Origin: Blastocladiella emersonii ATCC 22665
Taxonomy: Eukaryota; Fungi; Blastocladiomycota
Length of the DNA: 64,000 nucleotides
Direction of reading: 5' to 3'
Assembly: GCA_025594325.1 (NCBI GenBank)
Contig: JANHCV010000002.1
Location: forward strand, 2,604,001-2,668,000
The notes beneath the pieces are model-generated. The model was given only the letters and a program-made list of their open reading frames with translations. It did no database searches and was not told the DNA's origin. Made by a program: the position numbers and the translations under genes. Positions 3,239-43,428 of this stretch are shown piece by piece; position 1 is the first letter of the stretch; the number at the start of each line of letters is the position of its first letter.

Positions 3239-3351
3239 TGTGAATACACTTTGCCTTTTTTTCTTCGAAGATCACTCTTTCATGGCCTTCCGGAGCTGAG
3301 AGCCGGCAACACGGCGCGGAGCAGCGAAGGTGGCGGAGCTTGCTGGCAGGT

Positions 3352-3387
3352 GTGGCTGCGCCACCACGTGCGGTTGACCGACGCGTC
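3352..3387 (+). repeat. 36-bp direct repeat, copy 1
   Basis: gtggctgcgccaccacgtgcggttgaccgacgcgtc, 34/36 identical to 5386-5421. Confidence 0.85.
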
Positions 3388-3618
3388 TGACCTCGTCGGC
3401 CACACAGCGCTCGACGACCGTTTCGACGTATCGTGACGTTTTCCTCACATTCAGGCGGTGCTGCATGTGCGCTGATTTCAGATAGACGTCGCAGGATGGG
3501 TCAAAAAAGAGAGCTTGGCTCCGCAGGTCTTGCTCTCACGGTCCTCTCGCTTCTGCGCTCAAGTTCTGTGGCGGTATCCTTGAGCAAGTTGATGGTGAGA
3601 AATATTAGCAGTGCATGT

Positions 3619-5683: not shown

Positions 5684-8179
5684 CTAGGGGACCCGGATCT
5701 TGCACTCGAGCTTGGCGATCGTGTCCACCGCGCTGCGCACCTGGCCAAGGGGCACCCGCTCGACCTTGCCGCCTGCACCAGCGCGGAGCTGGACCGCGCC
5801 TGCGAACCCCTCGCGGTAGCCGAGACTGCCGATCTGGTTGTTTGAGCCGCCGCCAAGTGCAGCGTGGATAGCGTCGCGGTACAGCGTGCGGACCTGGTAC
5901 GATGCGTCCTCAAACACGGCGATCGCAACGACGCGGCCCGCAGGTGCCCTCTCGGGGTGGGTCATGTCGTTGAGCATGGCCTCGAGCGGGTAATCGACGA
6001 CACGGTTCACTGGACGGCCGCCGTTCATGCGCTGGATCGACTTGGGCGTTTCCGTGTGCGGCTCGATCTGCCAGTGGTCGACGAGCGCGGGCGCACCGTT
6101 GGCCGGCGCGTTGAAGCTGATGATGTGGATTCCCGAGCACTCGGTGTTGGTCCAGAGCAGACCGCCAATGTTGATGAGCGGCGCGTCGGAGCCGAGCGTG
6201 ACGCGGATCAGGCCGTGCTCCTTCAGGACCGAGTTGAGGCCCATGGACTCGATGGTCAGCTGGCGCTCGTTGAGGACAGGAACCGGCTGGTGCTGCTGCG
6301 GAACGGGCACCTCGACCGGAGCAACAGGAGTCGGTACGGGCTTGGGAGCTGGCGGTGCGGGTGAAGCGGGTGCAGCGGCGGGCTTAGCAGCGGGCGCCAC
6401 TGGAGAAGCGATGGCGACGGGCTCCGAAGCCGGCTTGATCGACTCAGCGACGGGCGCGGGCTTGGTCTCGACGGCGGGAGCGGGGCCCATGAACCCGTTG
6501 AGGATTCGCTGCTTGGCGGCGTCAGGCACGAACAGGTGCGCCTTGACCGTCGCGGCGACAGCGTCGCGGCCCTTGATCTGCGCGAGCGCGGCGAGCTCCT
6601 TGGCGAGGCGGGCCTCGAGCCACTGCACGAGGCACTGGTGCTGGTCCTTGGTCTGCCACGCCACGTACACGACCGGGTACACGTCGAGCGGGTTGGCCTT
6701 GGTGCGGCCGTGCGCGAACACGACGACGCGCAGCACCTTGAGCAGCACCACGATGCCGCGGTCCGTGAGCAGCCACCCGCCGTACGTCTGCTGCGACTGC
6801 GCGCCGAACACGCCCGACTTGCCGCCCGCGAACAGCGAGTCCATCCACGCCGAGCCGCCCTTGCGCACGCCCGTCGAGGCGGTGCTGGTTGAAGTAGATG
6901 CAGCGGTGGCGGGAGGAGGACCGGCGGCGCGGTACTCGGCCTCGCGCAGGAGGGCGCCGTTGATGTACTCGTGCAGGTCCGTGAACAGCGCGAGCATGGC
7001 CGGGTCGGCGAGCACGTTGCCGAGCGCCTGCGCGCGCTTGCTGACGTCGGCCACGTCGCCGAGGTTGATGCGCAGCACGGGCGACGACGACGACGACGTG
7101 TCGGTACCGAGGAAGCCGAGCAGCGCGAGCCGCGTGGTCGGGCTGACGTAGTCGACGAACACGCGCAGCGGGAAGCGGTCCATGAGCGCGGCCTGCGACG
7201 CCTCGAGCGGCACCTCGTTGGACGCGCCGAAGCACACGTGCAGCGGCGTGTCGACCATGGTGGAGCCGTTGGCGATGCGGCGCTCGTTGAGGATGGTCAT
7301 GAGGCACGACAGCGTCGCCTTGGACGCCTTGAAGATCTCGTCGAGGAAGGCCAGCTCCGTGTCGGCGAGCATGCCGCCGAGGTTGCGCTGCGACACGCTG
7401 ACGGTGGTCAGCGACTGCACGTCGATCGGGCCGATCAGGTCGTCGACGGTCGAGGTGGCGTGCAGCGTGGTCGAAAAGTGCGGGCGCGGCGTGACGATGC
7501 GCTTCATGGTCTCGTTGACGGCGTACGACTTGGCGGTGCCGGGCGGGCCGAGCAGCAGCACGTTCTGGCCCGAGAGCACGCTGAGCAGCAGCACGCGCAC
7601 GGCCTCGTCGCGGTCGAGCAGCGAGCCGCACAGCTGGTCGACGAGCTGGGTCAGCTCGGCGTGGTTGAAGGCGTTGTTCTTGTCCTGGAGGATGAGCGGG
7701 ATGACCTTCTCGGCCTTGACGCCGCCCAACGACGACGACGACGACGACTTGTTCTTGGCGGCGAGAGCGGCGGCCTTGGCCGACTCGGCGGCGGCGTGGG
7801 CCTCGAGCGCGGCGATCAGAGCCGTCGGGCACTCGGCGTCGGCGACGACCGCGTACCAGTCGCTGGCGAGCGTCGAGCGGAGCAGCGCGCAGTAGGCGAA
7901 CTGCAGGTCGCGGGCCTCGGCGCGGGCGTCGGCGTCCGAGCTCAGCTTGTGCAGCGACTTGAGGCGGGCGGCGAGCTGCGTGACGAGGGCCTCGGTCGGC
8001 ACGGCGGCGGGATCGGTGCCGCGCGCGGGCATGAGGAACTTGCACCCGTCGGCGGCGAGCATGTCCTCGACGCGGGCGCGCCACGACGGCCACGCGCGCG
8101 CGGACGTGAGGTCCTGCAGCGTCGTGATGGTGTCGGTCAGCGGCGAGTGCACGCGGCGCGTCTGCTGCTTGGTGGCCAT
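5684..8179 (-). CDS. RavA/MoxR-type AAA+ ATPase (831 aa) with Gag-like N-terminus and C-terminal ILEI/PANDER-like domain
   Basis: EAVRVLLLSVLSGQNVLLLGPPGTAKS (Walker A, AKS variant), AFLDEIFKAS (Walker B), ILNERR, GASNEVP..ALMDRFPLRVFVDYV: the RavA-subfamily pattern. Pro/Ala linker, then GIHIISF...VAIAVFEDAS...LGGGSNNQIGSLGYREGFAG. Single exon. Confidence 0.88.
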   Translation of the reverse strand: MATKQQTRRVHSPLTDTITTLQDLTSARAWPSWRARVEDMLAADGCKFLMPARGTDPAAVPTEALVTQLAARLKSLHKLSSDADARAEARDLQFAYCALLRSTLASDWYAVVADAECPTALIAALEAHAAAESAKAAALAAKNKSSSSSSLGGVKAEKVIPLILQDKNNAFNHAELTQLVDQLCGSLLDRDEAVRVLLLSVLSGQNVLLLGPPGTAKSYAVNETMKRIVTPRPHFSTTLHATSTVDDLIGPIDVQSLTTVSVSQRNLGGMLADTELAFLDEIFKASKATLSCLMTILNERRIANGSTMVDTPLHVCFGASNEVPLEASQAALMDRFPLRVFVDYVSPTTRLALLGFLGTDTSSSSSPVLRINLGDVADVSKRAQALGNVLADPAMLALFTDLHEYINGALLREAEYRAAGPPPATAASTSTSTASTGVRKGGSAWMDSLFAGGKSGVFGAQSQQTYGGWLLTDRGIVVLLKVLRVVVFAHGRTKANPLDVYPVVYVAWQTKDQHQCLVQWLEARLAKELAALAQIKGRDAVAATVKAHLFVPDAAKQRILNGFMGPAPAVETKPAPVAESIKPASEPVAIASPVAPAAKPAAAPASPAPPAPKPVPTPVAPVEVPVPQQHQPVPVLNERQLTIESMGLNSVLKEHGLIRVTLGSDAPLINIGGLLWTNTECSGIHIISFNAPANGAPALVDHWQIEPHTETPKSIQRMNGGRPVNRVVDYPLEAMLNDMTHPERAPAGRVVAIAVFEDASYQVRTLYRDAIHAALGGGSNNQIGSLGYREGFAGAVQLRAGAGGKVERVPLGQVRSAVDTIAKLECKIRVP

Positions 8180-8754
8180 GGTAGTGGTGCGTGACGAGTG
8201 CTGCAGGTCGGGTCGCGCGGCCGATTACCGGACGATCGAGGAGGGGAGACGGGAGAGGGAGCGCGGCGAAGGTTGAGCGACGGGCTTGCTGGTCCTGGAG
8301 GAGAATCCGAAGGGTATGTTCGGGCAAAGTGGCCGCTTCCAGCCACAGGATTCGGCGGAACAACGGATGTGCACGCGGTTCGAGAAGGCGCCGGGTTTGG
8401 GGGCGCTCGGGAACAGCGAAACCCAATAGCAGGGAAGCGCTGGGATCTGCGGGCCGGCGAGATGGCGCAGTCGCGGAAGTCAGATCGGCTTCGACGGACC
8501 GCCGTTCACGCTCGCTCTCTCGTCCTCGCCGACCTCTTCACGCCGTCGCGGGCTCTCGGGTCTCCACGCATCCGGCCCACTCGGCGCGCCGCTTCACGTC
8601 CTCGCCGTTGCTCCGCCTGTGTCCAAGCAGCCGTCGTGTGCTCCTCGGTCAGCGCTCGCATCAACAACTGTGCGTGCGGCGCGTCTCGCACGTCCCCCGA
8701 TCTCGTCTGGCTGACCCACGCGCCCCGCCTTGCCTAGTTGGGCGACCACCCGGA

Positions 8755-11700
8755 ATGGACCGTGACGCGTCTCCGGCGGCACGCGCTTCGGCCGCCGCGG
8801 CTGCTCCGCCTTCAGGCCCTCCCTCGCCGACCTCATCGGCACCCGGCACTCCACGCAATCGCCACCATGAATCGACCCATGCACCGATACACGCTCGCGC
8901 CGACTCGGGCGTCGACTTTGCCGTCGCGCCTGCTCCCGCCGCCCCGTCGGCGGCTCGCGCTGCTCCACCCGTGAGCGCTGCTGCTCCCTCGACCCCTGCA
9001 CCTGCACCTGCACTCGCACCTCCTCGACGCGATCCTGTATCGGCGACATCCGTCAACTCGCACGATGGCGCTCCGAGCCGCTCTCCTGTCGCGAAGCCGG
9101 TACGCGTCGGCTCACGTCCTGACGTAGGTCACTGCGTGCTCACTCGCTCCATTGCGCCAACTAGTCGGCCTCAACCACTGCTCCTGTTCCCGAGCCCGCT
9201 CCTACCGCCGCCGTCGCCTCGGCCGCGGCCAACCCCGGCCCCGCCGACGCGACCAGCGCCGCCAAGGACTCGACCGACGGGTCCAAGCACGCCAAGGTAC
9301 ACTATCACGCGCAGCACTCGATCCATGGTCTGTCCACTCACTCTGTACTCGCGTGTGTAGACCAACAATAAGACCGCCACCGCCGCCGTGTCCGATGCGG
9401 CCAGTTCTCGCTCCGCCGACGCAGCCAGCGCCGCCAAAGACTCGAGCGACGCGTCCAAGGACGCCAAGGTACGCCTGCGCCGATACGGCACGCTCGTTTG
9501 TCCATCCGCTCACTCGTTTCTCGTGTGTGTAGACCGACAAGAAGCCCGTCGCGCCCACGCGCTTCGCCAAGATCAAGTGGCACCAGCCCTTCTCACCGTC
9601 CGAGCCTGCCGGTAAGCGCCTCGACAAGATCGTCCCGCGCACCAAGCTCGATGAGATGATTGGCAAGTACCACCTGCGCGGCGTGCTCGACGTCGTCAAC
9701 GTGCTCGTCGCCGGCCCGCCTACCGATGAGGAGACAAAGGACGACGAGGGTGGCGACGATGATGATGAAGATGACGATGATGCCGCCGAGAAGAAGGACG
9801 AGTCGGCCGTCGCCGCCGACAAGCAGAAGGCCGACTCCGAGGACGCCAACGGCAAGGAGCTCGAGTCCAAGTCCGACGACAACGGCAAGGAGCCGCCGGC
9901 CGGCGAAGCTGTCCTCCCTGCTGCTGCTGCGGCCGCCGCGGCCGAAGCGGGCAACGCGGAGTCTGACGCGCGCGACTCGGACCGCGACGACGCGCCGTCG
10001 GACGCGGGCATCTCGGACGGCGACGCGACGGCGGACACAGATGCGCTGGGCGCAAAGCCTGCCGCCAAGACGGACAAGTCGGGCAGCAAGGGCGCCGACG
10101 ACAAGGACAAGGAGCTCGAGCCGCTCGAGCGCAAGGACATTGCGCGCGCTGGCATCGTCGCCACCTACACGGTCTCGTCAGCGCCCGACGGCCTCGGCTT
10201 CCTCGAGGGCCACACGTTCAAGGCCAAGATCATGCTCGTCAAGGTCCCCGTCGAGACGAAGGAGAAGAGTGGCGACTCGGCCGACGGCGAGAAGAGCGGG
10301 AAGCAGACTGAGTCGTTGACCGCCGGCCAGCAGCCCGAGACCACGCCCACCAGCTCGTCGACAACACGCCCGCGCGCCAAGGCCATCGTGACGGCGCCCG
10401 CCGGTCGGTCCGCCGACGCAGCGCCTTCGGCCGCATCTGCTCCCGCCACACCGTCGGCTACCGGCGCCGTGCGCGAGCCCGCCGAATCCAAGGTCACCGC
10501 GTCGTCCTCGAACGCTGACCCGGCCATGGCCGCGCCGCGCAAGCAGCGCTCCTCGTCCGCCGATGCTCGCGTTTTGGGTGAGCTCGACCCCTCGCTGCCG
10601 GTCCCTGCGGCCGCCGCCGAGCCTGGCTCGCGGGCTGGCGAGGGCAAGAGCGCGTCTGCGCCCGCCGAGTCTGAGGCCGCCACCGCCGCTGCGCCCGCCG
10701 CTGCGTCCGCTGTGGCAGACGCCGACGCAGGCGCCGAAGACAAGAAGAAGGAGAAGCCCAAGCAGAAGTGGGCGCCGTACTCGATCGAACTCGAATACCT
10801 CCCTGGCAAGTCCAACCCGATCCTCTTCTTCCCGGGCTGCCCGCTGGGCCCGCTCTCGCTCGACTCGGTCGCCGCCGTCCTCGCCGTCCGCGAGAAGACG
10901 CAGCTGCTCATTGAGTTCAAGGTCGCGCCGCCGCCCAAGGCCGACGAGGACAAGGGCAAGAACCGCGAGACCTCCTCGGCCGCCGGCTCGGATCCGAAGG
11001 ACCAGGGCAAGTCGGACGGCAAGCGCATCAACGAGAAGGCCGTAGGGCCGGCCGCCGTCGAGCCCAACGCTCCCGTGCCCACGCCGCCGTCGGCCGCTGG
11101 CGAGCCGAGTGCTCCCGCGCCTGCGCCACCCTCTGTCGACGCCGCCGAGCCGAACGCAACGGCATCTGCGTCGTTGCCGTCGGCCGAGACGAAGAAAGAC
11201 GGCAGCGGCGGCGACGACGCGCCCGCGACGTTCGGCCTCGACGAGTGCAGCGGCTCAGCGCGCTTCGTGTTCAAGAGCTTCAAGCCGAGCCTCGCCGCCG
11301 CCGAGCTGACGCTCAAGATCGCCGAGCCCGACTCGGACGACGGCGACGGCGACGCCAAGTCGCCCTCGTCGCCCACCTCTGCGCCCGCGCTCGAGTCCAC
11401 CAACAACGAGAAGCCCGAGTCGCCCTCGCTCGCCAAGCCGCCCGATTCGCTCCCGCCCGCCAACGACGAGTCCCTCGCCTCGTCATCGCCCGCTGCGGTG
11501 GCCAAGACGTCGGACACGGAGCAGCAGTCGGAGGAGAAACCCAAGACGCGCGCGGTCCACGCCGCCACGGTGATGCTGGCCTACGCGCCCGACGAGGGCG
11601 AGGACCACCACTGGTCGCTGTCCCTCAAGGCCAAGGGCAGCAAGGCCGTCGCGCGCGCACTCAAGCGCTTTGGCTCCGTCAACCTCGCCGTGCCCTCAAG

Positions 11701-14700
11701 CAGCGAGGTCCTACGCCTCACGGCCGCGAGCCTCGAGATCGACGTCGTCCGCCTGGCGTCCAACAAGCAGAAGGAGACCGCCGAAAATTCGGCTGCGGCG
11801 TCGCCCGAGCCCAATCTGGCCAAGACGGTCGACGCGGCCGCAAGCTCGACGGCGGCCGAGAAGCAGGAGGAGAGCCTGTGGAAGGTCCGCGGTGCCGGCC
11901 GCGCCGAGGTCGAGTTCGACCACACGATCGCGCTGCAGGACGGGCACCCGCTCATGTCGCTGCACGGCGCCGCCAACGCGACCATCGCGGTCCCGCTCGA
12001 CGGGCCGACGGTCGCCGAGTTCAACGGCATGCTTGAGCTCGCGTGGGCCGACGCTGTCGCTGCCGCTGCGCCGCACGTCGTGACCTCGACCACCTCGGCG
12101 ACCACCACCGCCATCAGCTCGCTGACCGAGACCAAGGAGACGAGTATTGAGAAGAAGACCACGGTCGCGGCTGATCCGCACCAGGTTGCTGTCGCCGCGC
12201 GCGCGTGCTGGGTCCCGCGCCGCATGCTCGACGTGTCGTTCGGTGTTGCGGGCGCCAACCTGTACGAGGTGTCGCCCGAGTGGCTGCAGTTCCTCCTGCC
12301 CAAGGGCAAGGCGCAGCTCGTGGTCCGGTACCTGTCGTGGTTCAAGCTCGCCGACCCCAAGAAGCCCTTCATTATCAAGGACGCGACCGACCCGATCTCG
12401 ACCGAGGGCCTGCTCAAGCTGATCGCCAGCCATGACGACGACCAGGAGGCCAAGAAGAAGAAGAAGCAGGAGCAGGAGGCCGGGGCTGCCGCCGAGAAGC
12501 AGGTCGGCGAGGCTGACAAGCAGACCGGCAGCGACACGGACGCGCCGAGCATCGCGCCCGCCGCCGAACCGTCGTCGGACCCCTCGTTGCAGAAATCGGT
12601 GGCACGCCGCCCGCGCAGCTCCTCGGTGCCGCCCACGACCTCCTCGACCTCTTCATCCTCGTCCTCGCCCGCCGCCAACGAGACCGCGACTGCGACATTG
12701 ACGCGCCCACGCGCCAACGCCGTGGACCGCTCGATCGACAATGTCACGCGCCCGCGCTCCAACGCGATCGCCCGTCGTCCGGCTGCGGCGGGGCAGCTTG
12801 ATGCGCCCGCCAAGGCCGATGACGACGAGGCCGAGGACCTCCCGCCGCGCTCGTCGCTGCTCGCCATCACCTACGCCGCCACCTCGGACCTCGCGACCAA
12901 GTGGGACGACGACACGGGTAAGAAGGCCGCCTTCTCGATGCTCGTGCTCCGCTCGCCGACCTCGGGCAACGCGTTCGTCGCCGAGATCAGCAACGTCGAC
13001 CTCGCGGTGCTGTTCGGGATCGGCGACAGCGTGCAGCTGTCCCTCGACAAGGTCCGGCTCACGTACAAGCAGCTCGACGAGGTCAAGGACCCCGACGCCG
13101 CTGCCGCTGCAGGTCCTGAGAAGGAGGGCGCCGCTGACGCCGCCGCGAATCCTGCCGAGTCCAAGTCCAAGTCCAAGTCTGCGGCGACCACGTCGGCAGC
13201 TGAGTCGTCGGCCAGCACCGCGTCGGCCAAGGAGCAGAAGCAGACGGCCGCCGGCGCCGACTCGGCCGCGCCCGCCAAGATCCCCGTGGACGTGTACCAG
13301 GCCGAGGGCGAGCTGACGCTGCTCGATGACATCAAGTTCTCGGTCGCCGCCACCATGTTCCGCGTGCAGGGCTCGCTCGACGACTGGGCGCTCCGCGGGC
13401 AGGCCGTCGTGTCGCACGCCAAGCTGGTCAAGATCGCGCCCGTCCTCGACGGCCTCGGCGCCAAGGCCAACCTCCGCATCCTCGCCATGAAGCAGCCCAT
13501 GCAGAAAAAGTACCTCGCGGTTCTCGACCGATCCACTGACGACGACGATGCTGACGGCAAAAAGGAGGGCGAGTCATCGGCTGACGAGCAGACGGACGAG
13601 GGCGGCAAGAAGGAGGAGGAGACTGCCGCCGCCGACGCGGCGCAGCAGCAGCAGCTCGTAGTCGCCAAGAACGACGCCGACAAGACTGACGACACGGCAG
13701 CTGCCGCCGCCGCCGCCGTTGTCGCGCTCGCCAAGAAGCCGTCGCTGCCGCCCGGACTCGAGAAGCTGTTCGAGGCCGGTGCCGGCGAGGTCCTCATCCA
13801 GGTCTCGCTCGCCGAGTCGAGTGGCGCGCTGCACCCGCGTCTCAACGGCGCCGCCATTGCGCTGTGCGTCAACATCCAGCTCAAGTCGGCCGGTCCCGCG
13901 TCTACCCCGACGGCCGTCGCTACCGTTGCGCCCAAGCGCGCGCCAACGCGGTTCGGCATCCTCGTCAACAACCCGGGCGCGCTGTTCAACAGCCGCGCGC
14001 TCGAGGAGCAGGAGATTGCGCTCGCCGGCAGCGTCACGACCGCGGGCAACGTGCTGATCCTCGGCCGCGCGCTCAAGCCCAAGCCGCTCACGGCGCTCAT
14101 GCTCATCCAGGCCATTGACTCGAGTTTCACGGCTGACGCGTCGGTCGAGAAGCTGCTGTCCGAGCTGCTCTCGGTCCGCATCTACACGATCGGCCTCGCC
14201 TTTGACCGCGGCACCGCCGCCGCCGAGGATGTCGCGAAGTTGTCCAAGTCGACCTTCACGTTCGTCGTCGGGTGCACGCTCTCGCACCTCGAGGTGCCCG
14301 TCGCCGTCATGTGCCGCGTCCAGGACGGCAAGCTCGGCGTACGCGTCGCGTGCCTCCCCGAGGCGGCCGCCGACGGGTCCACGGCGCTCACCGACCTGGT
14401 CAACGCGTCGCTCCCCGACGTGGTCAAGGACGTGCTCGACATGTCGCCCGTCCAGCTGGACCTCGTGTGGCTCGACATGCGCTACAACTGGATCGAGACC
14501 GCGAGCAGCGCCGCCTCCGCCGACTCGGCCAAGGAGCCATTGTCGTTGCCGAGCGATCCCGCCACCACGACCGCAACCACCGCCGTCGAGAAAAAGGACG
14601 CCGCCAAAAAGGTCGACATCGACGACGATGACGTGACGGACATCATCCTCAAGCAGCTGCCCAAGTGGTCGGCCAAGCAGGACCCGCCGCTCGTCACGGC

Positions 14701-17700
14701 CGAGGAGCTCGCCAAGGCGGGCAAGGGCGGCGGCAAGTACACGGGCAAGGGCTTCAACGTGCAGTCGGGCCTGCGCCTGCGGCTCGAGGGCGCGCTGTGG
14801 CAGCCGCTCGGCCTCGACGGCAAGTCCGTCCAGGGCGTGCTGCAGCTCGGCGAGGTGTTTGCCGTGCACGGGTTCCTGCCGCCCATCGATTTGGGGGAGG
14901 GCATCAAGTTTGACGCCAACAAGCTCACGCTGACGCGGACCGACATTGACGTGGCCGTCGCCATGACGATCCGCGTGGACGGCAAGCCGTGGGCGCGGTT
15001 CGCGGGCTCGCTCGCCGCCACGCTGGGCGTCTCGCCGCTCGTGCTCAAGGCCGACATTTCGCTCGAGCCCGCGGCGGCCAAGGCGTGGATCGCGCTGGGC
15101 GACCTCGCCGACGCGCTGCGCAGCATCTACCTCAAGGGCCTGCGCCTCGGCATCGAGCTGGGCGAGGCCAAGCCGAGCGTGTGCTTCTCGGGCGGGCTCA
15201 AGATCCACGACCCGGCCATGTCGTACCCCGTCCTGGGCGCTGTGTCGCTCAAGCTGCCCCCGCTCAAGTTCTTTTATTCGGTTGCCAAGGACGTGTCGTT
15301 CACGGGCCTGCTCGCGCCGTTTGTCGGCGAGAACAGCGCGCTCCTGCGCGGGCTCGCGTGGGTCGAGCGGGTGCTGCCGGGCATCAAGCACCTCGAGCTT
15401 TTCTTCAAGCTCGACCCGACGGCCCACGCCGACGTGAGCGCGCTGCCCGACATGAGCAGCGGCAGCACGTCTTCGGACAAGGGCAGCATGCGCCAGTACC
15501 TCATCGACAACAAGGCGCTCGAGGCGGGCAGCATGGCGATTGCCGCGCGGTGCGAGCTGTCGTTTTTCGGGATGGAGGCCAAGATCGAGGGCAGCGCCAT
15601 TGCGACGGGTCTCGATCCCAAGAAGTCTGCGGTGTCGCTCGCGTCGCTGCCCACGGCGCTCGTCCATTTCGACGCGACGCTGTCGGCCGTCAAGTGGCTC
15701 GGCGGGCGCCTCGTGCTCGCGGGCAGTAGCCACGACCTCGCCGCGGCCATGAAGTGCACGCTCGAGCTCGACACGGCCAAGGGCCTGCTCGAGTTTGATT
15801 TCGCCGCCTACATCCACCTCGACCTGTTCGTCAAGCTCGCCGTCGAGTGCCGCGCGCAGCTCAAGCGGCACCCCAAGACGGGCCGCACGCGGTTCACGCT
15901 CGCCGCCACCATCATGCTGTCGGGCGCGCAGTCCGCCATCTGCCTGTCGGGCTTTTTCGTGCTCGGGTTCCAGTCGCTCGTCCCGCCCGCGGTGCAGCCC
16001 ATGGTCGAGGAGGCGTTCCCGCCGGCGCGGCTGCTCATGGTGCCGTCCGAGATCGGGCTCAACCTGCGCCTGTTCGGCGCGACCAAGAACGCCGACGGCA
16101 CGCTCGGGTCGGCCGGCCTCGTGCAGTGCCTGTTCCAGATTCTGGGCGACGCGTGCAGGGGGTTCGTGGACACGAGCAAGGCGGCGCTCAAGGCCGCCAA
16201 GGACAAGCTGGACGAGAAGCGCCGCAACTCGAGCATTGGGTTCTTCTACGCGCTCGGCAGCGCGCTCCTGAGCGCCGTGTCGTTTGTCGTGGACCTTGCG
16301 GGCAAGGCCATCAGCTTCGTCACGTCGGTCCTCGCCAAGCTCACGGCCGCGCTCATCGACGTGCACTCGATCCATTTCGGGGGCGGCATCCAGGTCGACG
16401 CGGCGAGCGGCGACGCGGGCGCGCAGGCGTACCTCAACGTGCACGCCGTGATTCTGGGCACCGAGTTCAAGTTTGGGCTCAAGGTGTCGACCAGCGGCAA
16501 TTTCCTGCGGGTCCTCGCCGACGTGCTCGTGACGCTGCTCGCTGCCGACTACAGCGAGAAGACGGACGCGGCGGCATCGGTCGGCCAGTACTACCCGTGG
16601 GTCGACGGCGAGTGCTCGACGGAGCCCGAGCCGCCCAAGGTGCAGACGCCGCCGGGCTCGCGCATCCCCATGCTCCCGAACAGCGCCTCCGCGAAAGAGC
16701 AGGACGCGGCGGCCGAGCTGCGCAAGGAGCTGCAGGAGGCGACCGACGCCATGGCGAGCGCGCCGCCCGCGCCGCCGGCCAGCGCCCCGCCCACGACGCG
16801 GTGCCCCGCGTGCTTCCAGGCCGTCGTGAGTGCCGACCCGACGGTCGACGCGCACTCGGCCGTGTGCCCCAAGGCGCTCGTGCGGTGCGTGGCGTGCGAC
16901 GGCATGGTCGCGCGCGACGCCGTGGACTCGCACCGCGCGAGCGGGTGCAAGGAGATGGCCAAGCTCGACGAGCGCACGCGCACGGCGTGCCCGCACTGCG
17001 CGACCGAGGTGCTCGACGTCAATTTCCACCTCAAGGTCGACTGCCCCGCCGTCGTTAAGTCCGTCGAAAAGTGCGCCAAGGCCGGGTGCGGCGCGCTGGT
17101 GCCCGCGGGCGCCATGGCCGCGCACCTGCAGCACGTGTGCGCCAAGAACATTGTCGCGTGCACCTTCTGCCGCGCGTCGGTCGTCGCGCGCGACCGCGAG
17201 GTCCACGAGACGTACGAGTGCGCCCGCCGCGACATCAAGTGCACGCGGTGCGCCGAGATGGTGCCGTACGTGGACGGTGACACGGTCGAGGCGCGGCTGC
17301 TGCGACACTCGCGCGAGGCGTGCTGGACGACGTGCGCGCGGTGCACCGGCATCTACCTCCGACAGAACGAGGAGGCGCACCGCCGCGAGTGCAAGCCGTC
17401 GGTGCCGTGCAACGTGCCCGGGTGTGTCCGCCAGCTGTTCAAGACGCGCATCCTGCCCAACGTGTACAGCGGGCGGTGCCGGTTCTGCGACGAGTCGCTG
17501 CCCGACGACGAGGCCCTCGTCGCGCACCTCCGCACCTGCGCCAAGGCCCTGCTCGCGCCCGCGACGGGCAGCGCGTGCGGCGCCCTTTCGCTGCACCACG
17601 GGCCCGACGGGACGACACCCAAAATCGTGCTGCCCGGTGGTGGCTGCTGCGACGCCAACGGCTCGCCCGCGCTGCTCGCGGTGTGCGACCCCTCCGCCGT

Positions 17701-19987
17701 CACGATCGCCGAGGACGCTACCGTGCCGTGCCCGCACGGCTGCGGCGCGCTGATCAAGTCGTGGGGCGCCTTTGGCGCGCACCTCGACACGTGCGCCAAC
17801 TTTGAGCGCCGCTGCCCGACGCCCGGCTGCGGCGTGTTGGTGGTGGGCGGCGCGACCAGCGCCATGTTCACGCACCTGCTCACGGCCTGCCCGAACGCGA
17901 CGACGGTGACAGCACCGTGCCCCTCGCCCGGGTGCGACGCCGTGCTGCCGATCAAGGACCTCAACGCACACCTGTTGCTCGAGTGCGCGACCAAGGTCGT
18001 GCGCTGCCCGCACTGTTCCGAGAACGTGGTCGGCGGGCTCGTCCGCCACCTGAACCAAGACTGCCCCGCGTACCGCGTCGCCTGTTCGATCGAGGGCTGT
18101 CCCGCGCCCGAGTACGTCAAGATGGACGAGTTTGAGCACCTCGTCGCGCACCACATTCTGCTGCCGCCGCTCGCGCGGCCCGTCGACCCGGACGCGATCG
18201 TGGGCCACGACCTCGATCTCGGCAGCGACCCGGCGCGCGCGCTGTCGTCGGAGCTGGCGCGGCTCGGCATGGACCCGTCGCACCCGCTGTACCTCGAGGC
18301 CGTCCACCGCCTCGTCGCGGGCTCGCTGCTCGTCCGCGAGCCGGCCACCGTCGGCCTGCCGTGCCGCAACCTGTGCGGCCACTCGTTTGACGCGCCGCAC
18401 GAGGAGGCGCTGCACGTCGCGTTCAAGTGCTCGCTCGGCATCGTGCGATGCCCTCACCCAAACTGCGACATCGCGTACGCGCCCGGCACGCACCACATCC
18501 ACGCCGTGACCGAGTGCATCGACGCGCGCGTGCCGTGCCCGCACACGGCCGTCTGCCCCGCCTCCCAGTCCGACGCGGTCCCGCTCCTCATGACGACGCA
18601 CCACGCGGTCGTTGAGTGCGCGTACGCGACGGTCGCGTGCTGGTTCTGCCCGGCGCGCGAGTCGCGCGGCAAGCTCGGACGCCACATGCGGCTCGCCTGC
18701 CCCGAGCGCCACGCGCCCGCGCGGTGCGACCAGTGCGCGGCCACGTTCCCGCGCAGCCATCTGGTCAAGCACCTGGTACTGGGCTGCCCGGCGCGCAGGG
18801 TGCCGTGCGGCGTCGGGTCGTGCACCGCGCTCGTGGCCTCGGCGGACCTCGTCGACCACTGGCTGCACGCATGCGAGTCGTCGCTGCTCTTGGGTGCCGC
18901 CAAGAAGCAGGCGATGTGCACGCGGTGCAGCTCGGGCGCCATTGCGTCGTACCGGGACTGGCTCGCCCACCTCGTCGGCGGCGATTGCAAACCCGCCAAC
19001 TCACACGCGTGCGGTTCCCAGACGCCCAACACGACCACGACGATGAAGACCTTGTCGCTCGCGGGCGCCTCGGACGCCGTCGTCGTGCCGTGCCCGATGC
19101 GGTGCGGCTCCCCCGACATGCCGCTCGGGCGGCTCATGGAGCACCTCGTGGTCGGGACGGCCAAGCACCCGCCGTGCAAGCAGCTCGACTTTGACTGGCC
19201 GTGTCCCAACGCGCGCGCCGGGTGCGAGGCGTCGGTCAAGCGGTGGTCGGTGCAGCACCACCTGCAGCACGAGTGCAAGTTCCACCGCGTCAGCTGCCCC
19301 ATGTGCGACGCGGAAATGGAGTCGACCGACCTGCCCAACCACTGCGCGCTCGAGTGCCCGAAGCGGTACAAGCTGCGCGTGCTGTCGCAGGGGCTCAGCG
19401 AGAAGGCGCGCAAGCAGGGCGACGTGGTGGTCGCCGTCAACGATATCGCGATTGTCGACGTCAAGAACCAGGTCGACGCGACGCGGTCCGTGTGGCGCGG
19501 GCTGCACGTCGTGGCCATTGATATTGTCAGCGGCGGCAACGGGCCCGACGCGCAGCACCAGCCGGCGGTCCAGCACTGGCTGTTCGACACGCACGAGCGG
19601 GTGCGCGACGCGTGGCAGATCCACCACGACGGCGCCGCTGACCCGACGCACCGCACGCTGACGAGCACCGTGTGGCGCACGTCGCTCATCGACACGATCA
19701 AGTCGCTCGTCGACGGCAAGACGGCGCCCGCGTTCCGCGTGATCGTCATGGCGGTGTACGACGAGGCGTTCTGGCACCTTTACGCCGACGACCGCGCGGC
19801 GATCCGCGCGACCATGGGCGGGCCGAACAACGAGATCCAGAAGCTCGCGCACCGCGAGGGGTATGTCGCCGTCATGCAGCTGCGGCCCGCGGGCGACGGG
19901 TCGCTCGCGCGCGTCCACCTCAGCGAGCGGCGCACGCCCGAGGGCGAGACGGTCAAGATGGAGGGCCTGCTTCCGTGGGCCATGTGA
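8755..19987 (+). CDS. Giant (~3,680 aa) protein: disordered N-terminus, long beta-rich middle, >20 TRAF-type zinc fingers, C-terminal ILEI/PANDER-like domain
   Basis: 3443-aa ORF with strong codon bias, extended upstream through inferred introns 9100-9164, 9297-9360 and 9469-9532 to ATG 8755 (start tentative). C-x2/4-C-x(10-18)-H-x(3-5)-C repeats at ~16800-19360, e.g. CPNARAGCEASVKRWSVQHHLQHEC. C-terminal RGLHVVAID..FDTH..MAVYDEAF..HREGYVAV. Confidence 0.85.
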
Positions 19988-20069
19988 GATGTAGTTTTGA
20001 ACCTTATGTAGTGAGTTGTTGAGTTGTTTTCGCGGCGAGTTTCTCGAAATTCGTGCGAGGAAGCAGAAC

Positions 20070-22400
20070 GTGAGTGGCGCGACGCGTCTTTGGCTGCTGC
20101 TGCAGACGCGCACCGATCTCCTCGCGTACAGCTCCGAGTACCCTGCTTTCTATATTCCAAATCATGGTAACGGCACGCAATCGACAAACGCCGCCCCGCG
20201 CCCAAAGCTCCCACCGCAACCAGCGTGCACCGCGCTGCGACCATGAGATTGCACAGAGGGCCGCACTCGCGCGGGCGACGCGGTCTTTTCACGGCGCCCG
20301 GGCGAGTGCGGCCCACACAGCGCGGTGCAGGAAGGTGGGTGAGACTTGAGCTGCAGGGGCGGGAGTCGATTGACTGATTCGCAAGGTTTCTGGCCATGTG
20401 TCGCTCGAGAGGACGAAGTAGAGTATGGGGTAGATGTTGAGTCGAGTCTTGGGACGGATGGCGTGTCATTCGGAACGCTTGTAGCCTCGAAGCGCGTTTC
20501 CATCACGCGGGGAACACAGCATGAGAATATTGACAAGCAGGACGGGCGAGTACACTCGCTGCGAGAGCCTATCGGGCTTCCCGTCGCGTCCTGCAAAAAG
20601 TCTCATCCTTGACCGCATGAGGCAAGCCGACCGGAATCTAGCCGCGGAACGTATGAATCATCTACGTCTTCTGTCGCTCGTACAGTTGAAGAGGAGAATT
20701 GCGTACGCCGGCGCCGGCACGGGTTACAAGGAAGAAATCGGCTGATCGGCTCGCGGCACGCAGAACTCGTCGTGCTCACCAGACGAATCCCAATCATTTC
20801 CACTTTCCGTGCAGAGTCGAGGCAGATTCAGCGCTCTCTGTGAGGTAGAGGCGGCCGTCAGCGACCAGGCGACGGCGCCATGACATCGCGAGCGGCCCGT
20901 ACTCAACGCGTTCAATCGCGCCGCCCACAACTCGTTCATGTCGGTGACAAACATCCGTTGCATCAAGTTATGCTTCGCTGTGTCTAGTTTGCTTCCATTC
21001 GCTTCGTGGCAGTCGGTGAAGAGGATGCGAGCGGCGCCTCACGCCGATGTGACCGACGCGACCAAGATGACTCGACACCCATCATCTGGTTGTGCTGCGA
21101 CCCGTTGCCGCTACCACCACCGCCGACGTTGAGCTGCTGTATCGAGCACATGGGTGGCAAGGGCGGTGCCGGACCGCGCAGGAGCGGCGGGTACCCGGGG
21201 TCGTCGTTGCCGCTAGCGGGCGAGTGCGAGCGCTGGTTGCCGTAATACCCGCCGCGGCTGCTGCTGCCACCGCTGTCGCGGCGATCGCCGCCCCGCGAGT
21301 CGTAACGACTGCGGTTGCCGCTATCGTTGCGCGAGTCGTACCGGTCGCCAAGCCCGCCGCGGTCATCGTAGCCACCGCGACCATCACTGTCGCCGTAGCG
21401 GTGAGTGGCGTGACGCGTCTTCAGGCAGCCGCAGAGCACGGTCGCGGATCCCTTCGAGCTCTCAACATGTCCACGATTGAGCAAATTGCTTGCTATTTTA
21501 CAAACTAACGCACAGCGCTACGATGGGCCTGCCGCTGTGCAGCCGAAGCTCCCACCACAACCGTCCTGAATCGTGCTGCGACAACGAGTGTACAGAAGGC
21601 CGCGCACGCGCGGGCGACGTGGACCTTTCACGGCGCCCGAGCGAGTGCGGCCTACACAGCGTGATGCAGGAGGGCGGGTGAGACTTGAGCTGCAGGGGCA
21701 GGAGTTGATTGACTGAGTTGCAAGGAATTGGGTTTCTTGCGCGAGATTGTAACGCGAACGCGTGTTGGGCAAGAGAGCCAGCGCGTAACGGAAGATACGG
21801 TGCGTGGAACAACAAGTTCTCGATGCCAAGCCTCCGAAGCGCGCGTGGAACTCAGATTGGGTAACTCGACGCGGCCAGATCGATGAGTCGCGAAGTCCAG
21901 TTCAAGTGATCGGCTGCACGTCGCGTACTGCAGAGGTCAGACTTCGAGTGCGTGCAAAGCTGTCTTGGTGTCTTAATCTTGGCGCGGGTCGATGAGATTC
22001 TACCCGATGAACGTATGGGTCATCCGCGTCACTGGTCGCGCGATCGCCGTTGCGTCCGGCTGATTGGTCTACGGCGTCGCGCCGCGCGCTTCGTGCTCGC
22101 GATGATCGTCCATTTCAATCAATGCATCAGGGCAGCTCCGAGAAAAGCTCAGCTCCGCCTGCGAGACAGAGACGGCCGTCAGCGACAAGGCGTCAGGGCG
22201 CGCGACGGCATGGAGAGCGTCGCGTACCTGGGATTATGACTTGCGCCGCTCAGTACTCGCTTAAGTCGGCGACATAAAGCTATTGCAACAAGTTGTGCGT
22301 TGCGGTCTAGACTGTGCTTCCATTCGCTTCATGGTGGTCGGTGAAGGGACTGCGAGCGGTGCCTCACGCGGTGATGAACCTCGCGTCCACCGCGCTGACC
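20070..22400. repeat. Diverged ~1.33-kb tandem duplication, apparently non-coding
   Basis: Colinear anchors at offsets 1321-1339: gtgagtggcgYgacgcgtctt (20070/21401), gagacttgagctgcagggg (20341/21680), ggccgtcagcgac (~20853/~22174), gcttccattcgcttc (20991/22316). Confidence 0.75.
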
Positions 22401-34318: not shown

Positions 34319-35237
34319 CCGCGGGCGGGGCGCGGGTGGGGGTGGGCCGTTCGGGGGACGAGATTTGCTTGTAATGAACCTTCGTGTATTTACGAGATGG
34401 ATCGACTCAGTTTGTGTCCCGCTAGCCTCACTGCGACCCCATCGACCTCGCGTGGTTCAGCGGGTACGCGCAGGGGTACGCGGCAGCAGCGAGGCGAGGC
34501 AGAGACGCGTCGATCAATCATGTGAGGGTGGCGCCGGTCGCCAACGCGACTTCGCCGACCTTGTGGCGCCACCCTTTCCCTTGCGACCGCCGACGACCGT
34601 CCTCATCGTCAATGTCGGGCGACCATGAGCTGCTCTACTCCTATCGCAACGCAACCACGAACCGACCACCTGAAGCTCGGTTGCGGTTCCCGCCGCGCTG
34701 CGCCACCACACCGGCACGGTCACGGCGATCGATGGTCGAGGTTCGGCGGCGCGGTCCGACCGGGTTCCGCCGTCTCCCACCTCGGGATCCCACGCCGTGA
34801 CCGCGAGCGCGCGCGGTGGGTGCGCCCATCGGCCCTCCCGGCGGTCCCTCGCCGCCGCGACTTTCTCGGGTGGACCGGTCCTCTCTCTCCACCGCCCGAG
34901 ATCTCTCGTACGACGTCCTCTTGACGGCGAGACACACGCATCCTGCACCCGCACTCGACTCCGACCTGCTGCTGTACGGGCCCGTCCGCAGCCGCGATCC
35001 CGCCTGAGAACACATCGCTGACCCGCCGTCGTTGCCCGCGACTTGTAGGCGCGCACACATGTGTGATCGGGCTTCGACAACGGCACCCGGACTCGTTCCC
35101 GACCTTCTACGGTACGAACACTTGCGCTCTCGGGCCGCCGCGATGGATCGCTGACCCATCACCCGCGACATCACAGGCGCGCACGCGTCCAGGCCATCGA
35201 CCAACCCTTCTCGCAGTCGCAGATCCCGCACACCACC

Positions 35238-38121
35238 ATGGACCGCCCGCTCATGCAGTCGCCGCCGCGGCGTCCCAACAAGCGCGCCAAGCGCGGCAAG
35301 GGCGGCAAGGTGGCCGCGTCGTCCGACCCGTGGCAGGCGCTGACCAACTCGGACTCGGCCGAGCTCATCACCGGCCTGCCCGACCTGTCCTCCACCCACC
35401 CTCCCGCCCCCACTCCGCCCGCGCCGCAGCCGCAGCCGCAGTCGCAGCCAGTCCGGCCGTCCCCGTCGTGGTCAGCCAACGTGCCGATCGAGGCCCTCTT
35501 GATCCTGATCGCCCTGTCGGCCAACGTCCTCGGCGCCGACCTGTCCACTGCCTCTTCGCTCCCCGTCTCGACGCCGCCGCTCGCGTCCCTCGCGTCCTCC
35601 GCCCCACCTCGGACCGCCGCGAGTGTCCGCACCGCCGCCGCGAGCGTGCGGGCGTACCTGCGCGGCATGCACGCCGAGACCCACGCCGCCAACACGCCTT
35701 CGGCCGTGCGCCAGGCCGAGAACCTGCGCTTCGCCACGCTGGCAGCCCAGTGGGCCGCGGTGGTGTTTCGCTCGCCCGGTTTCGCGGGCACCACTGCGGC
35801 TGCGGCCGCCGGCGAGGAGGGCGCCGTGGAGGCGGACGCGGACGAGGCGCGCGGCGTGCCCCGTGGCGTCCATATTGCGCACACGGCACTTCGTCATCGT
35901 GTGGGTGACGGCGACCAAGCTCACCACGCCGGGTCGGTTTCGGTTCCGAACGCGCACACGGACCTGCTCGAGGCTGTCGCTGTCGCTCCCGCTGCCGAGA
36001 CCACGGGCGACGTCGATGTCGACGTCGACGAGGACCTCGGTCCGCAGCTCGTCGCCGTCGCGCTGGTCACGCACATCCAGCTCGCGATTCTCGCGACCAC
36101 GGGCGGGTTCGCGATCCAGGCCGCAACGGCGACTGGCCAGACCATGCCCAAGGTCGGGACGCTCACGGCGCACGAGGCCATCCTGGCCGAGCTCCTCGCC
36201 GTGTCCGATGGCGCCGCGTCGTGGCTGCTGTCGACCGACGTCGCGGTTCCGGGCTCCGATTGGCGCGACCTGGTCAGGTTCAGCGGCAGCGACCTCGGCA
36301 ACCGCATCTCGGCCCTCATCGGCAACGGCGACACGGAGCACCCCGGGTTCCACTTCCTCACGGGCCTCGCTGGTCTGTGGTGGAACGTGCCGGCGCTCAG
36401 CCAGCTCATCGAGCCGCACCCAGGTGACGACGAGCCGTCGCGCGCCCGCCGCGAGCAGTGCCGCAGGGCTGACGCCCGCGGACTCGTCCAGGGCACGCTG
36501 TTGCGCGAGCCCGTGTTCCAGCAGCTCATCGCCGACATCACGGCCGCGGCATCGGAATCCAGCTCGGCGTCGCTCAAGCTGGCCATGCCCAACGTCGGCA
36601 TGAGCACCTTCGCCAAGGCCCTGGACATCATTGGTCGGTACGGCTGGGCCACCGCGAGCCCCAACCAGCGCCACCGTCTCGACTTCGCCATCGCCCACCA
36701 TGCGCCGTTCGCCCTCCTCCTGTCGAGCGGGCACGTCCGCACGCGCGACGTCGTGTTCGGGCCCCGCTCGTGGGCCGTGCTCATCACGCACCACCTCGTC
36801 CGGGGTACGCTGTCGAGGATCCAGAAGGCGCTCAAGAAGATCCCGCTCGAGGAGTACCCGGTGTCGTCGGCATGGCCAGTGGATGCCAAGGTGATTGGCA
36901 ACGGTTCGTGCTGCTCGCCCTCCACTCACGCCCACCTCCGTGCGGAAAATACTGACTGACCGCTCGTCGCTGCATGTAGTGATTTTCCTGGCCGCGCTCG
37001 TGTCCGCGGGTGCGCCGCAGGACCTGCGCGTCGTGGTCCAGTTCGCGCGCAAGGTGGTCCCGGACAACGAGCACTTCCTCGGGTCGGTCGTCGTCGACGC
37101 GTGCGGCTTCGCGGGTTCGGAGCAGGAGCTCGTCCAGCAACTGGAGCGCCAGGCGGCGCTGCCGCAGCAACAGCAGCCCGCGCGCGGCGGCCATGGACCT
37201 GTCGTCGGCTCGCTCGCGTACCTCCTCGCGGCGGTGGCGAGGGGCCTCGTGGCACCGTGGGACGAGATCGCGGTTACGCTGCGCCTGCTCGCCAAGCTGC
37301 CGGCGGCCGCAGCTGCGGTCCGCGACCGCCTCGTGTCCACGCTGGGCGACCCGGCCGTCGCGATCCAGACGATTGCTGCGCTCGGAACAGCGCCGCCGGG
37401 TATCCGGTCGCGTCTTCTCGACCTGATCACGGCGAGTGGGAGTGCCGGCGTGCTGATATCGGGCACGCTCGAGGCCGTGTGTGCTGCCGCAGGCGGCGTC
37501 GGTGGCGGGTCCGAGGACGGCGACGATCGCGAACGCGTGTACCGACACGTCCTGCTGGCGCTGCCGCGGTTCGAGGCCAGACACAAGACGCTGCCGAACG
37601 GCGGCTGCTGCCGCGAGCCGGCATGCCCGGTCCAGGAGCAGCGCGTGTGCCGTCACGCGCTCGAGATCCTGCTGTCGGCGTTCCGCGAGACTGTCGCGTC
37701 GCCGCAGTTCTGGACGGCGGGCGCGGCCGAGGCCGTCAAGCAGTACTTCCTCGTGCTCGACCGGAACCACCAGCAGCAGTTCCTGTCGGCGGACGCGGTC
37801 GCGGCGGCGGTCGGTCGCGCGGCGGCCACGTACCACGACCACGACGGTTACGACGTGCGCAACGAGTACGGCCACGCGCCGCGTGTCGTCGACGTGGCCG
37901 CCGAAGGCGAGTCCAAAGACGGCGGCGCGGGCGTCGTCGGGCCGGCCGCTCCGGCGTGCTGGTGTGACGGCTCGGTGCGGCTCACGGTGGCGGCCAAGCT
38001 GTGCGCCGTTGCGCCCGACGCGGTCCGGTCGCTGTTCGCGGGCGAGCCTGTTCCGCAGGTCGTGGCCGTGCTCGTGGCCGAGGTCGACCGGCAGCAGCAG
38101 CAGCACCTGCACGCTTCCTAA
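35238..38121 (+). CDS. Unknown-family paralogue A (left arm), ~935 aa
   Basis: Exon 35238-36903, intron 36904-36979 (GTTCGT..ACTGAC..TAG), exon 36980-38121 in frame. Shares motif blocks with B and C. Confidence 0.7.
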
Positions 38122-38995
38122 GCCTCGATTCTCTCGTCCCTCCCTCGCACGCGCATCAGGCAGTCTCGTCGCTGCCGCTCATTTCCAATACACAACACGT
38201 TGTTGATCACCTGCCTCGGTCACCGGCCTGCCTGCGCTTCTCCTCGCCGCCGACAAGGAAGTGGAGACGCGACGATCAATCACGTGAGGGCGGCCCCGTT
38301 CGCCACCGAGGTCGCCGACCTTCGCGAACGCCGCCCCTTCGAGTTGCCCCCGCTCCGCGTGCCGACCTCTCCGACACAGAGCGACCATGAGCTGCTCGAC
38401 GCCGACCGCAATCGCACCCTCACCTGCAGCACCGCGCCCGCCCAGCACGCCCGGCCCGCGGTCTCGCTCGGCCTGATCCCGCTCGGCCTGATCCCGCTCG
38501 ACCGTGGCGCAGCGATGCGGCCCCGCAATCCCCCGTCTCCCACCTCGACACCCCACGCCGCGGCCGTGACCGCCGTGACCGTGGGAGTGCTCGGCGCGTG
38601 ACGGCGGATGCGCCCATTGGGCCTCCTCGGCCGCCGCGCTCCCCCGGACTCGGCCACATCCCTCCCTTCCTCCCTCGCCCCCATCTCTCTGCACCCACTC
38701 AAGCACATTGCTCCACGCGAGCACCTACGACTCTTGCATCTTTGCGAACGCACGACGGTACGGGCCCGTCCGCGGTCGCGCGCCCCGCCCACAGAGCATC
38801 GCTGACCCTCTGCCGTCGCCCGCGACGTGACAGGCGCACCCCCGTCGGTTCTCGGGCCTCTACGACTGCGCCCGCACCCGCTCCTGGCCCACTTCGGTAC
38901 GATCTCTCGCGGTCGTGCGCTGGCGCGACGGATCACTGACCCATCACCCGCGACATCACAGGTGCTCCCGCACGCCGACCCTCGCGCCAACGACC

Positions 38996-41900: not shown

Positions 41901-42711
41901 GCGGCAGCTGCGGCAGTGCCCGGTCCAGCAGCAGCGCGTGTGCCGACACGCGCTCGAGGTTTTGCTGTGGGAGTTCCTCGCGACAGTGGTGTCGCCGCAG
42001 TCGTGGACGGCGGGCGCCGCCGGGGCCGTCAAGCAGTACTTCCTCGTGCTCGACCGGAACCACCAGCAGCAGTTCCTGTCGGCGGACGCGGTCGCGGCGG
42101 CGGTCGCTCGTGCGGCGGCAACGTACCAGGCCCACGACGGGTACGAGCCGCGCTACGAGTACGGTCGCGCGCCGCCGCACGGCGTCAACGTCATCGTCAA
42201 CGCGGGCGTCGGCCCCTCCAAGGGCGGCGACGACGAGGCGTGCGACGTGGACGACGTCGAGGTCAAGCGCGCGCCCGAGGAGGACGGCCACGCGGCGTGC
42301 GACGACGACATGGTTGTTGACACGGTCGTCGCCGTTGTCGAGGGCGAGTCCAAGGACGACTGCGCGCCGCGCGACGCGGATGGCGTCGACGTCAAGCGCG
42401 AGCCCGAGGACGACCACGCGCCGCGCGAGCCCGAGGACGACCACGCGCCGTGCAACGTGGGCAACGTCGAGATCAAGCGCGAGCCCGAGGAGGAGTCCGA
42501 GGCCGGCGGCGCGGGCAACGGCGGGTCGGCCGGGCCGGCGTGCTGGTGTGACGATTCGCCACGGCTGACGCTGGCGGCCAAGCTGTGCGCCGTGGCGCCC
42601 GACGCGGTCCGGTCGCTGTTCGCGGGCGAGCCCGGCGGCGTGCCGCAGGTCGTGGCCGTGTTCATGGCCGAGATCGACCGGTTCCGTCCGCCTCCCCATG
42701 CGACTACGTGA
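38996..42711 (+). CDS. Unknown-family paralogue B (left arm), with a frame problem at its intron
   Basis: ORFs 38996-41188 and 41281-42711 are homologous to A exons 1 and 2. The A-equivalent donor (41203) is out of frame and preceded by TGA 41186-41188. Confidence 0.6.
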
Positions 42712-42712
42712 G

Positions 42713-43407: not shown

Positions 43408-43428
43408 CACACTACCACGACCGCAACC

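Follow-up and report, generated by a model that had tools for sequence, protein, structure and literature searches.

What keeps a bacterial-type remodelling ATPase next to a giant zinc-finger protein in a fungal genome, and what is the domain that the two proteins have in common? Both questions are raised by a 64,000-nt stretch of DNA, hereafter the window, from the 2.84-Mb contig JANHCV010000002.1 of Blastocladiella emersonii ATCC 22665 (assembly GCA_025594325.1), an intron-poor and early-diverging fungus; the GC content of the window is about 70%. An AAA+ ATPase of the MoxR class and a giant protein with an array of TRAF-type zinc fingers are encoded there by divergent genes, and their C-termini are homologous. 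We propose that the two form a head-to-head module specific to Blastocladiomycota, in which the giant protein would replace the VWA partner of the ATPase, the two genes would be co-regulated and ILEI-like domains would co-target both products. A probability of roughly 40% seems appropriate for this reading as a whole. The evidence for it, and the readings that compete with it, are considered in turn below.

The head-to-head gene pair

The ATPase gene (5684-8179, minus strand) is intron-less and encodes a protein of 831 amino acids (aa), P0001, in full agreement with the public gene model. The protein is 100% identical to one on JANHCV010000002.1, and the next most similar proteins likewise come from B. 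emersonii or from Allomyces. The giant gene occupies the plus strand, as an uninterrupted open reading frame (ORF) of 3443 aa at 9656-19987 or, in the public model, as a gene for 3553 aa at 9066-19987 with three short introns within its first ~470 nt. Both ORFs had been described correctly in an earlier note on this DNA (the original prediction). The gap of about 575 bp that it gave between them is too short: the start codons of the ATPase and of the public model of the giant are 886 bp apart, and 1476 bp separate the ATPase ATG (8179) from position 9656, where the long giant ORF begins. The shared 5' intergenic region delimited by the gene models and the sequence (8180-9065, 886 bp, unstranded) is a candidate bidirectional promoter. 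The word 'system' used for the two genes borrowed the logic of bacterial operons; the pair is to be read as a eukaryotic head-to-head pair, with no operon sense. At the 5' end of the giant gene (9066-9655), repeated exon-like units encoding similar Ala/Ser/Asp/Lys-rich peptides accompany the three short introns.

The assignment of the ATPase to the MoxR class was borne out by its match to the bpMoxR model PF20030 (E=1.2e-38, 132.7 bits against a Pfam cut-off of 27), next to a match to AAA_5 (E=2.2e-19). Pfam and a motif alignment place the AAA+ core at 7121-7657 (minus strand, aa 175-353), and the AAA lid lies at 6620-6772 (minus strand, aa 470-520; PF17868 AAA_lid_8, E=3.5e-5, 23.9 bits against a cut-off of 22.8 on a fragment). 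Walker A (GPPGTAKS), Walker B (FLDEIF), the ASN sensor 1 and the arginine of DRF are all intact in alignment A4. Judged by this core and these motifs, the protein can be counted as an AAA+ ATPase of the MoxR class. Pfam returned no match on its N-terminus. A Pro/Ala-rich linker (6275-6445, minus strand) leads to the ILEI/PANDER-like C-terminal tail (5684-6274, minus strand, aa 636-831). Outside Blastocladiomycota, the nearest relatives among the search matches are bacterial bpMoxR proteins, 38-44% identical over the core, and one green algal protein.

The giant protein is of a very different build. Pfam searches with pieces of the ~2,400 residues that precede its zinc fingers gave no match, and this stretch is largely beta-rich and low-complexity. 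It includes a conserved beta-strand-rich core (14723-16795, plus strand, ORF aa 1690-2380), in which hydropathy marks a hydrophobic helix at aa 2194-2212. This core is 29% identical to the Allomyces protein P0127 and also matches the giants linked to ATPases in Allomyces. An AlphaFold2 (AF2) model of the core (aa 1690-2420, three-sequence alignment) was poor, with a predicted local distance difference test (pLDDT) score of 41; a feature search of the Atlas was weak (0.71), with DUF6603 as its sole lead, and a word-indexed homologue search returned B. emersonii paralogues only and missed Allomyces. The array of about 21 CCHC TRAF-type zinc fingers follows (16802-19306, plus strand, ORF aa 2383-3217). 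It matches zf-TRAF (PF02176) with 37.2 bits against a cut-off of 27, a regular-expression count gave 21 CCHC units, and cysteine density is highest over the same array. Pfam added a weak CEP104_ZnF match and detected neither RING nor MATH/TRAF-C in the giant. The chain ends in an ILEI/PANDER-like C-terminal domain (19373-19987, plus strand, ORF aa ~3240-3443).

Conservation of the pair in Blastocladiomycota

The original prediction called for a search of other genomes for the linked pair, and it was found at three loci of B. emersonii and in three species of Allomyces. Within B. emersonii, the second pair (P0002 and P0121) is a near-identical inverted copy on the same contig as the window, and the third (P0122 and its ATPase) is a diverged pair on another contig (L003:3591-9404). 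A fourth ATPase copy is solitary and decayed. In Allomyces macrogynus, A. arbusculus and A. javanicus, an ATPase homologue divergently adjoins a giant gene of ~3,900-4,100 aa whose product is collinearly homologous to the window giant, with a weak zf-TRAF match in A. arbusculus. Since the two genes are adjacent in Blastocladiella and in three Allomyces species, their adjacency is older than the split between the two genera. This conserved adjacency is the strongest argument for a functional coupling of ATPase and giant, and the recurrence in Allomyces suggests a two-protein machine.

Further relatives of the ATPase were met in the same genomes. The third B. emersonii locus carries a second ATPase-head fragment beside DUF707-type genes. 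The gene model P0029 (JANHCV010000006.1) combines an ATPase lid fragment with a Helitron_like_N match below threshold (23 bits against 28.9), a hint of a Helitron insertion into a member of the ATPase family or of the partial capture of such a member by a Helitron.

A shared ILEI-like domain

The last ~195 residues of the ATPase and of the giant align by BLASTP with E=5e-18, 27% identity and 47% positives. The alignment takes in RVVAIAVFEDAS of the one and RVIVMAVYDEAF of the other, together with the strands GIHIISF and GLHVVAI. The homology of the two tails, which the original prediction had drawn from these motifs and strands, is real and far beyond chance.

The identification of this domain as ILEI/PANDER held in reciprocal profile, fold and feature searches, but both tails miss the Pfam gathering threshold of PF15711 (ILEI), which is 27 bits. 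The ATPase tail reaches 14.4 bits (E=0.057), the giant domain gives no match, and the stand-alone protein P0123 reaches 18 bits. Profile A1, built from five Blastocladiella tails and searched against 1.84 billion representatives, recovered 20 proteins. Blastocladiomycota members came first and all others were multi-domain proteins, with E-values from 5e-12 to 8e-4. Every match from outside Blastocladiomycota that was scanned with Pfam contained three to six ILEI domains (whole-protein E 1e-68 to 1e-138). Of the bacterial multi-ILEI proteins, one has a caspase domain in addition and a second matches PI-PLC-X weakly.

Structure comparisons lead to the same families. The AF2 model of the ATPase tail has a pLDDT of 85.7 and a predicted template modelling (TM) score of 0.86. 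A Foldseek search of the PDB with this model placed the POMGNT1 stem or FAM3A/B/C at all ranks from 1 to 17 (E from 1e-5, TM up to 0.67), and a clear gap separates these 17 matches from the unrelated ones beneath. The AFDB cluster search gave the POMGNT1 and FAM3 families again, and the ESM Atlas search agreed (TM 0.64, root-mean-square deviation 2.7 Å over 146 residues). A language-model feature search ranked the ILEI cluster first (0.93). With the giant-type profile A3, the PDB sequences ranked the POMGNT1 stem on top (E=0.006) and FAM3C next (E=0.04). The mixed profile A1 put designed armadillo repeats at the head of a PDB sequence search, a spurious match of low-complexity type that was rejected, and POMGNT1 at E=1.3. 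As the profile search, the fold search, the feature search and the giant-type profile agree, the shared domain is, by profile homology and modelled structure, a divergent form of the three-layer (beta-beta-alpha) ILEI/PANDER fold and falls below the Pfam cut-off.

The domain is not confined to the linked genes. It also occurs in the stand-alone proteins P0123, where it is in tandem, and P0125, both at unrelated loci. The Allomyces protein P0127 (3214 aa) combines a TRAF finger with an ILEI-like end. It is the sole Allomyces giant found by the tail profile (E=1.7e-10) and is only about 30% identical to the ATPase-linked giants of that genus. In the domain tree, the three B. emersonii ATPase tails form one clade with 96/99 support, which argues for a single acquisition. 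The sister relationship of ATPase and giant domains about which the original prediction had asked was not resolved, and the tree does not settle whether the tail came from the neighbouring giant. Judged by this distribution and by the Allomyces ATPases, which have no such tail, giant-type proteins have long carried the ILEI-like domain, and the ATPase gained it in the Blastocladiella lineage alone.

Several genes around these proteins may be recorded here. The A. javanicus ATPase P0007 (L007) is flanked by two genes of the Ifi-6-16 family, P0123 lies near a weak URGCP-GTPase-like gene, and P0127 stands beside a gene for a dynamin-like GTPase. These neighbours could be a coincidence or hint at an immune-type neighbourhood.

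Inverted duplication and the divergence of tails

The window pair belongs to a 13.9-kb duplicated segment (6445-20356, unstranded) that has an inverted copy, 99.885% identical by blastn, at a distance of 52.9 kb on this contig. Included in the segment are the complete giant gene, the region between the two genes and the first 578 codons of the ATPase. Because its inner edge falls inside the Pro/Ala-rich linker of the ATPase, at about codon 578, P0001 and P0002 have heads that are identical as far as the linker and ILEI tails that are only 37% identical.

A fusion junction that coincides with a repeat boundary invites suspicion, all the more in a genome where near-perfect palindromes can stem from long-read artefacts. 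The fusion of ATPase and ILEI-like tail, or the duplicated pair itself, might be a mis-join of assembly or annotation, and we regard this as very improbable. In the DNA contigs of the same sample, depth rises from 116 to about 250 exactly at the edge at 6445, in two runs, and an independent de Bruijn contig of 5186 nt extends from the unique ATPase tail 40 nt into the repeat, crossing the same position. The P0001 and P0002 ATPases both read through in frame, and the third, diverged locus has the same architecture. Since contigs of the same sample bridge the unique tail to the rest of the ATPase gene, the fusion and the duplication look real and are no assembly chimera.

The repeats of the region have further features. 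Over the ATPase head (6500-8000), short-read contigs reach depths of 500-1000, where unique flanks have 116 and the two-copy segment has about 250. Besides the four loci seen, the genome must therefore contain additional copies or fragments of the head. Downstream of the giant gene (20070-22400), a 155-bp stretch recurs with 85% identity at 21543-21695, beyond the end of the duplication at 20356. A second inverted repeat of 11.4 kb (34623-46012 and 47489-58878, 99.95% identity) has its arms ~1.5 kb apart and mirrors several long ORFs; this repeat could be a genuine palindrome or an artefact of long reads that folded back.

In such a setting, the ATPase could have gained its ILEI-like domain as a by-product of local duplication or recombination, with no joint function of the two proteins and an adjacency due to chance or to a shared promoter only. 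The region is recombinationally active: one inverted duplication has its edge within the linker of the ATPase, and the window contains another inverted repeat, of 11.4 kb. The genome is rich in large inverted repeats. The ILEI-like domains of P0123 and P0125 and the lack of a resolved sister relationship between ATPase tails and giant domain are also in keeping with an accidental gain. However, chance accounts poorly for a head-to-head adjacency kept in Blastocladiella and three Allomyces species. Furthermore, the single clade of the three ATPase tails, all of them open reading frames despite their deep divergence, implies long retention. An origin without joint function is thus conceivable, but we consider it doubtful.

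The modules of the pair have diverged to different degrees. Between the first and the third locus, identity amounts to 76-84% for the ATPase head, 74% for the finger array, 68% for the giant core, 58% for the giant ILEI domain and 34% for the ATPase tail. By these figures, the ATPase tail is much the fastest-diverging module of the pair. Its divergence fits a concerted evolution that would stop at the linker, and selection for tail diversity is possibly involved.

Fast-changing tails also raise the prospect of a conflict or recognition system, in line with the possible defence role named in the original prediction. The ATPase would then carry a fast-diversifying ILEI-like sensor tail, the giant would be a signalling or effector scaffold, and a non-self or parasite ligand sensed by the tail would make the ATPase switch on the response. 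The ATPase tails are 34-38% identical where the heads are 76-100% identical, and the ATPase family is multi-copy, with decayed copies and one copy beside Helitron-like sequence. The Pfam model that the ATPase matches is that of the MoxR proteins of bacterial MoxR-vWA-beta-propeller ternary systems, which have been described as conflict systems (PMC7159879). The caspase domain and the weak PI-PLC-X match among the bacterial multi-ILEI proteins point in the same direction. On the other hand, Pfam recognised no effector domain in the ATPase or the giant, and the divergence of the tails may only mean that they escaped gene conversion. In the paper on the ternary systems, ILEI and TRAF-type zinc fingers do not come up at all, and fungi appear solely in a cited title (PMC7159879). 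TRAF-type fingers alone do not imply immunity either. On balance, we find a conflict system unlikely.

Sugar-contact residues and cell location

In the stem of POMGNT1, Arg129, Asp179 and Arg207 are reported to contact beta-N-acetylglucosamine (beta-GlcNAc) (PMC9802357). The HMMER alignment obtained with A3 equates these residues with the R of RGLH, the D of DEA and the R of REGY in the giant domain. The triad is complete in the giant-type domains of the window, of P0122 and of the Allomyces protein P0127.

By sequence inspection, no N-terminal hydrophobic signal is present in the ATPase or in the giant, and in this they depart from the characterised ILEI members, which are secreted or luminal. 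With no signal peptide, and with the domain joined to an ATP-dependent enzyme in one case and to zinc fingers in the other, both proteins would probably reside in the cytosol or the nucleus.

How the pair may work

Under the head-to-head module proposed here, the two genes would be transcribed from the shared bidirectional promoter. The giant would stand in place of the usual VWA partner and serve the ATPase as client or scaffold. The ILEI-like domains of the Blastocladiella proteins would gather the two, through a common ligand or through direct contact between the domains, and the ATPase would then remodel the giant or its complexes.

A number of observations weigh against this proposal. No significant conserved block was found between the intergenic regions of the first and third loci. 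The ATPase of the third locus has lost its Walker A (GPPSMTKS) and carries a frameshift, although the ORF of its ILEI tail is still intact. Alignment A1 shows S, T or V in place of the first sugar-contact Arg in the ATPase tails, and the tail of P0001 has E at the Asp position as well. In Allomyces, the A. javanicus ATPase P0007 has no giant neighbour, and P0127 is next to the dynamin-like gene with no ATPase beside it. The Allomyces ATPases end in a coiled-coil-like region and have no ILEI tail, and no Allomyces giant of ~4000 aa was among the A1 profile matches to the 1.84 billion representatives. From this absence among profile matches we infer that the ATPase-linked Allomyces giants also lack an ILEI end. 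The shared domain, presented in the original prediction as the hallmark of the pair, does join both proteins in Blastocladiella; with untailed ATPases in Allomyces and no linked giant among the profile matches, it is not essential to the conserved pair.

A bolder combination of these elements may be sketched by analogy. The pair could be a cytosolic eukaryotic recognition module, in which a MoxR-type ATPase would bear exchangeable, fast-diverging ILEI-like sensor tails on identical heads, a state maintained by gene conversion halting at the linker, and a giant TRAF-finger scaffold would bear the ancestral GlcNAc-competent domain. Such a module would be a fungal analogue of the bacterial conflict systems centred on MoxR. 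We hold this to be quite improbable; if true, it would provide the first intracellular role for the ILEI fold.

Whatever its function, the pair offers a testable case for the rewiring of a bacterial-type remodelling ATPase in a eukaryote and for the ligand of an intracellular ILEI domain. It is equally a case in which to test how a sharp-edged gene conversion can hold the heads of an enzyme uniform as its binding tails grow apart.

Comparison with known systems

We found no paper describing the pair of ATPase and giant, and each of its parts can be compared with a known family. The CCHC fingers of the giant match PF02176 above the cut-off, like those of TRAFs, TRAFD1 and XAF1. Unlike in these proteins, about 21 fingers follow one another in a single chain after ~2,400 residues, and no RING or MATH/TRAF-C was detected by Pfam. 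Lacking the full set of RING, fingers and MATH/TRAF-C, the giant would not be classed as a TRAF protein.

ILEI/PANDER domains are known from secreted or luminal proteins, among which sugar binding has been demonstrated for the POMGNT1 stem, FAM3C and FAM3A. The window domains share the predicted fold of FAM3A-D, the POMGNT1 stem and the GG domains of CEMIP/TMEM2, as well as a reciprocal profile relation with them, and the giant domain, unlike the ATPase tails, has all three of the Arg/Asp/Arg residues to which beta-GlcNAc binding is assigned in POMGNT1. They differ from these families by scores below the Pfam cut-off, by long insertions (~195 aa against ~150), by their fusion to an ATPase or to zinc fingers and by the absence, on inspection, of a signal peptide. 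The ILEI/PANDER fold is thus met here on two apparently cytosolic proteins.

MoxR-class ATPases are known chiefly from prokaryotes and work there with VWA partners, as in RavA-ViaA, CbbQ-CbbO and NorQ-NorD. A canonical pair of this kind is present in Aeromonas, where a VWA_2 gene lies directly downstream of a relative of the window ATPase. The window ATPase resembles these enzymes in the match of its core and lid to PF20030, AAA_5 and AAA_lid_8, in its intact motifs and in its tight linkage to one partner gene. It differs by an additional N-terminal region and, in Blastocladiella, by the ILEI-like tail, and the pair is eukaryotic and head-to-head, with no operon. Pfam detected no VWA/MIDAS or beta-propeller in the giant, in its pieces or in the neighbouring genes, and by domain content the fungal pair does not qualify as a member of the MoxR-VWA or ternary systems. 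A MoxR-class ATPase has thus become fixed in an early-diverging fungal lineage beside a wholly different giant partner, in an arrangement kept across two genera. By analogy, the pair may still work as the MoxR-VWA systems do, through an ATPase and its dedicated partner.

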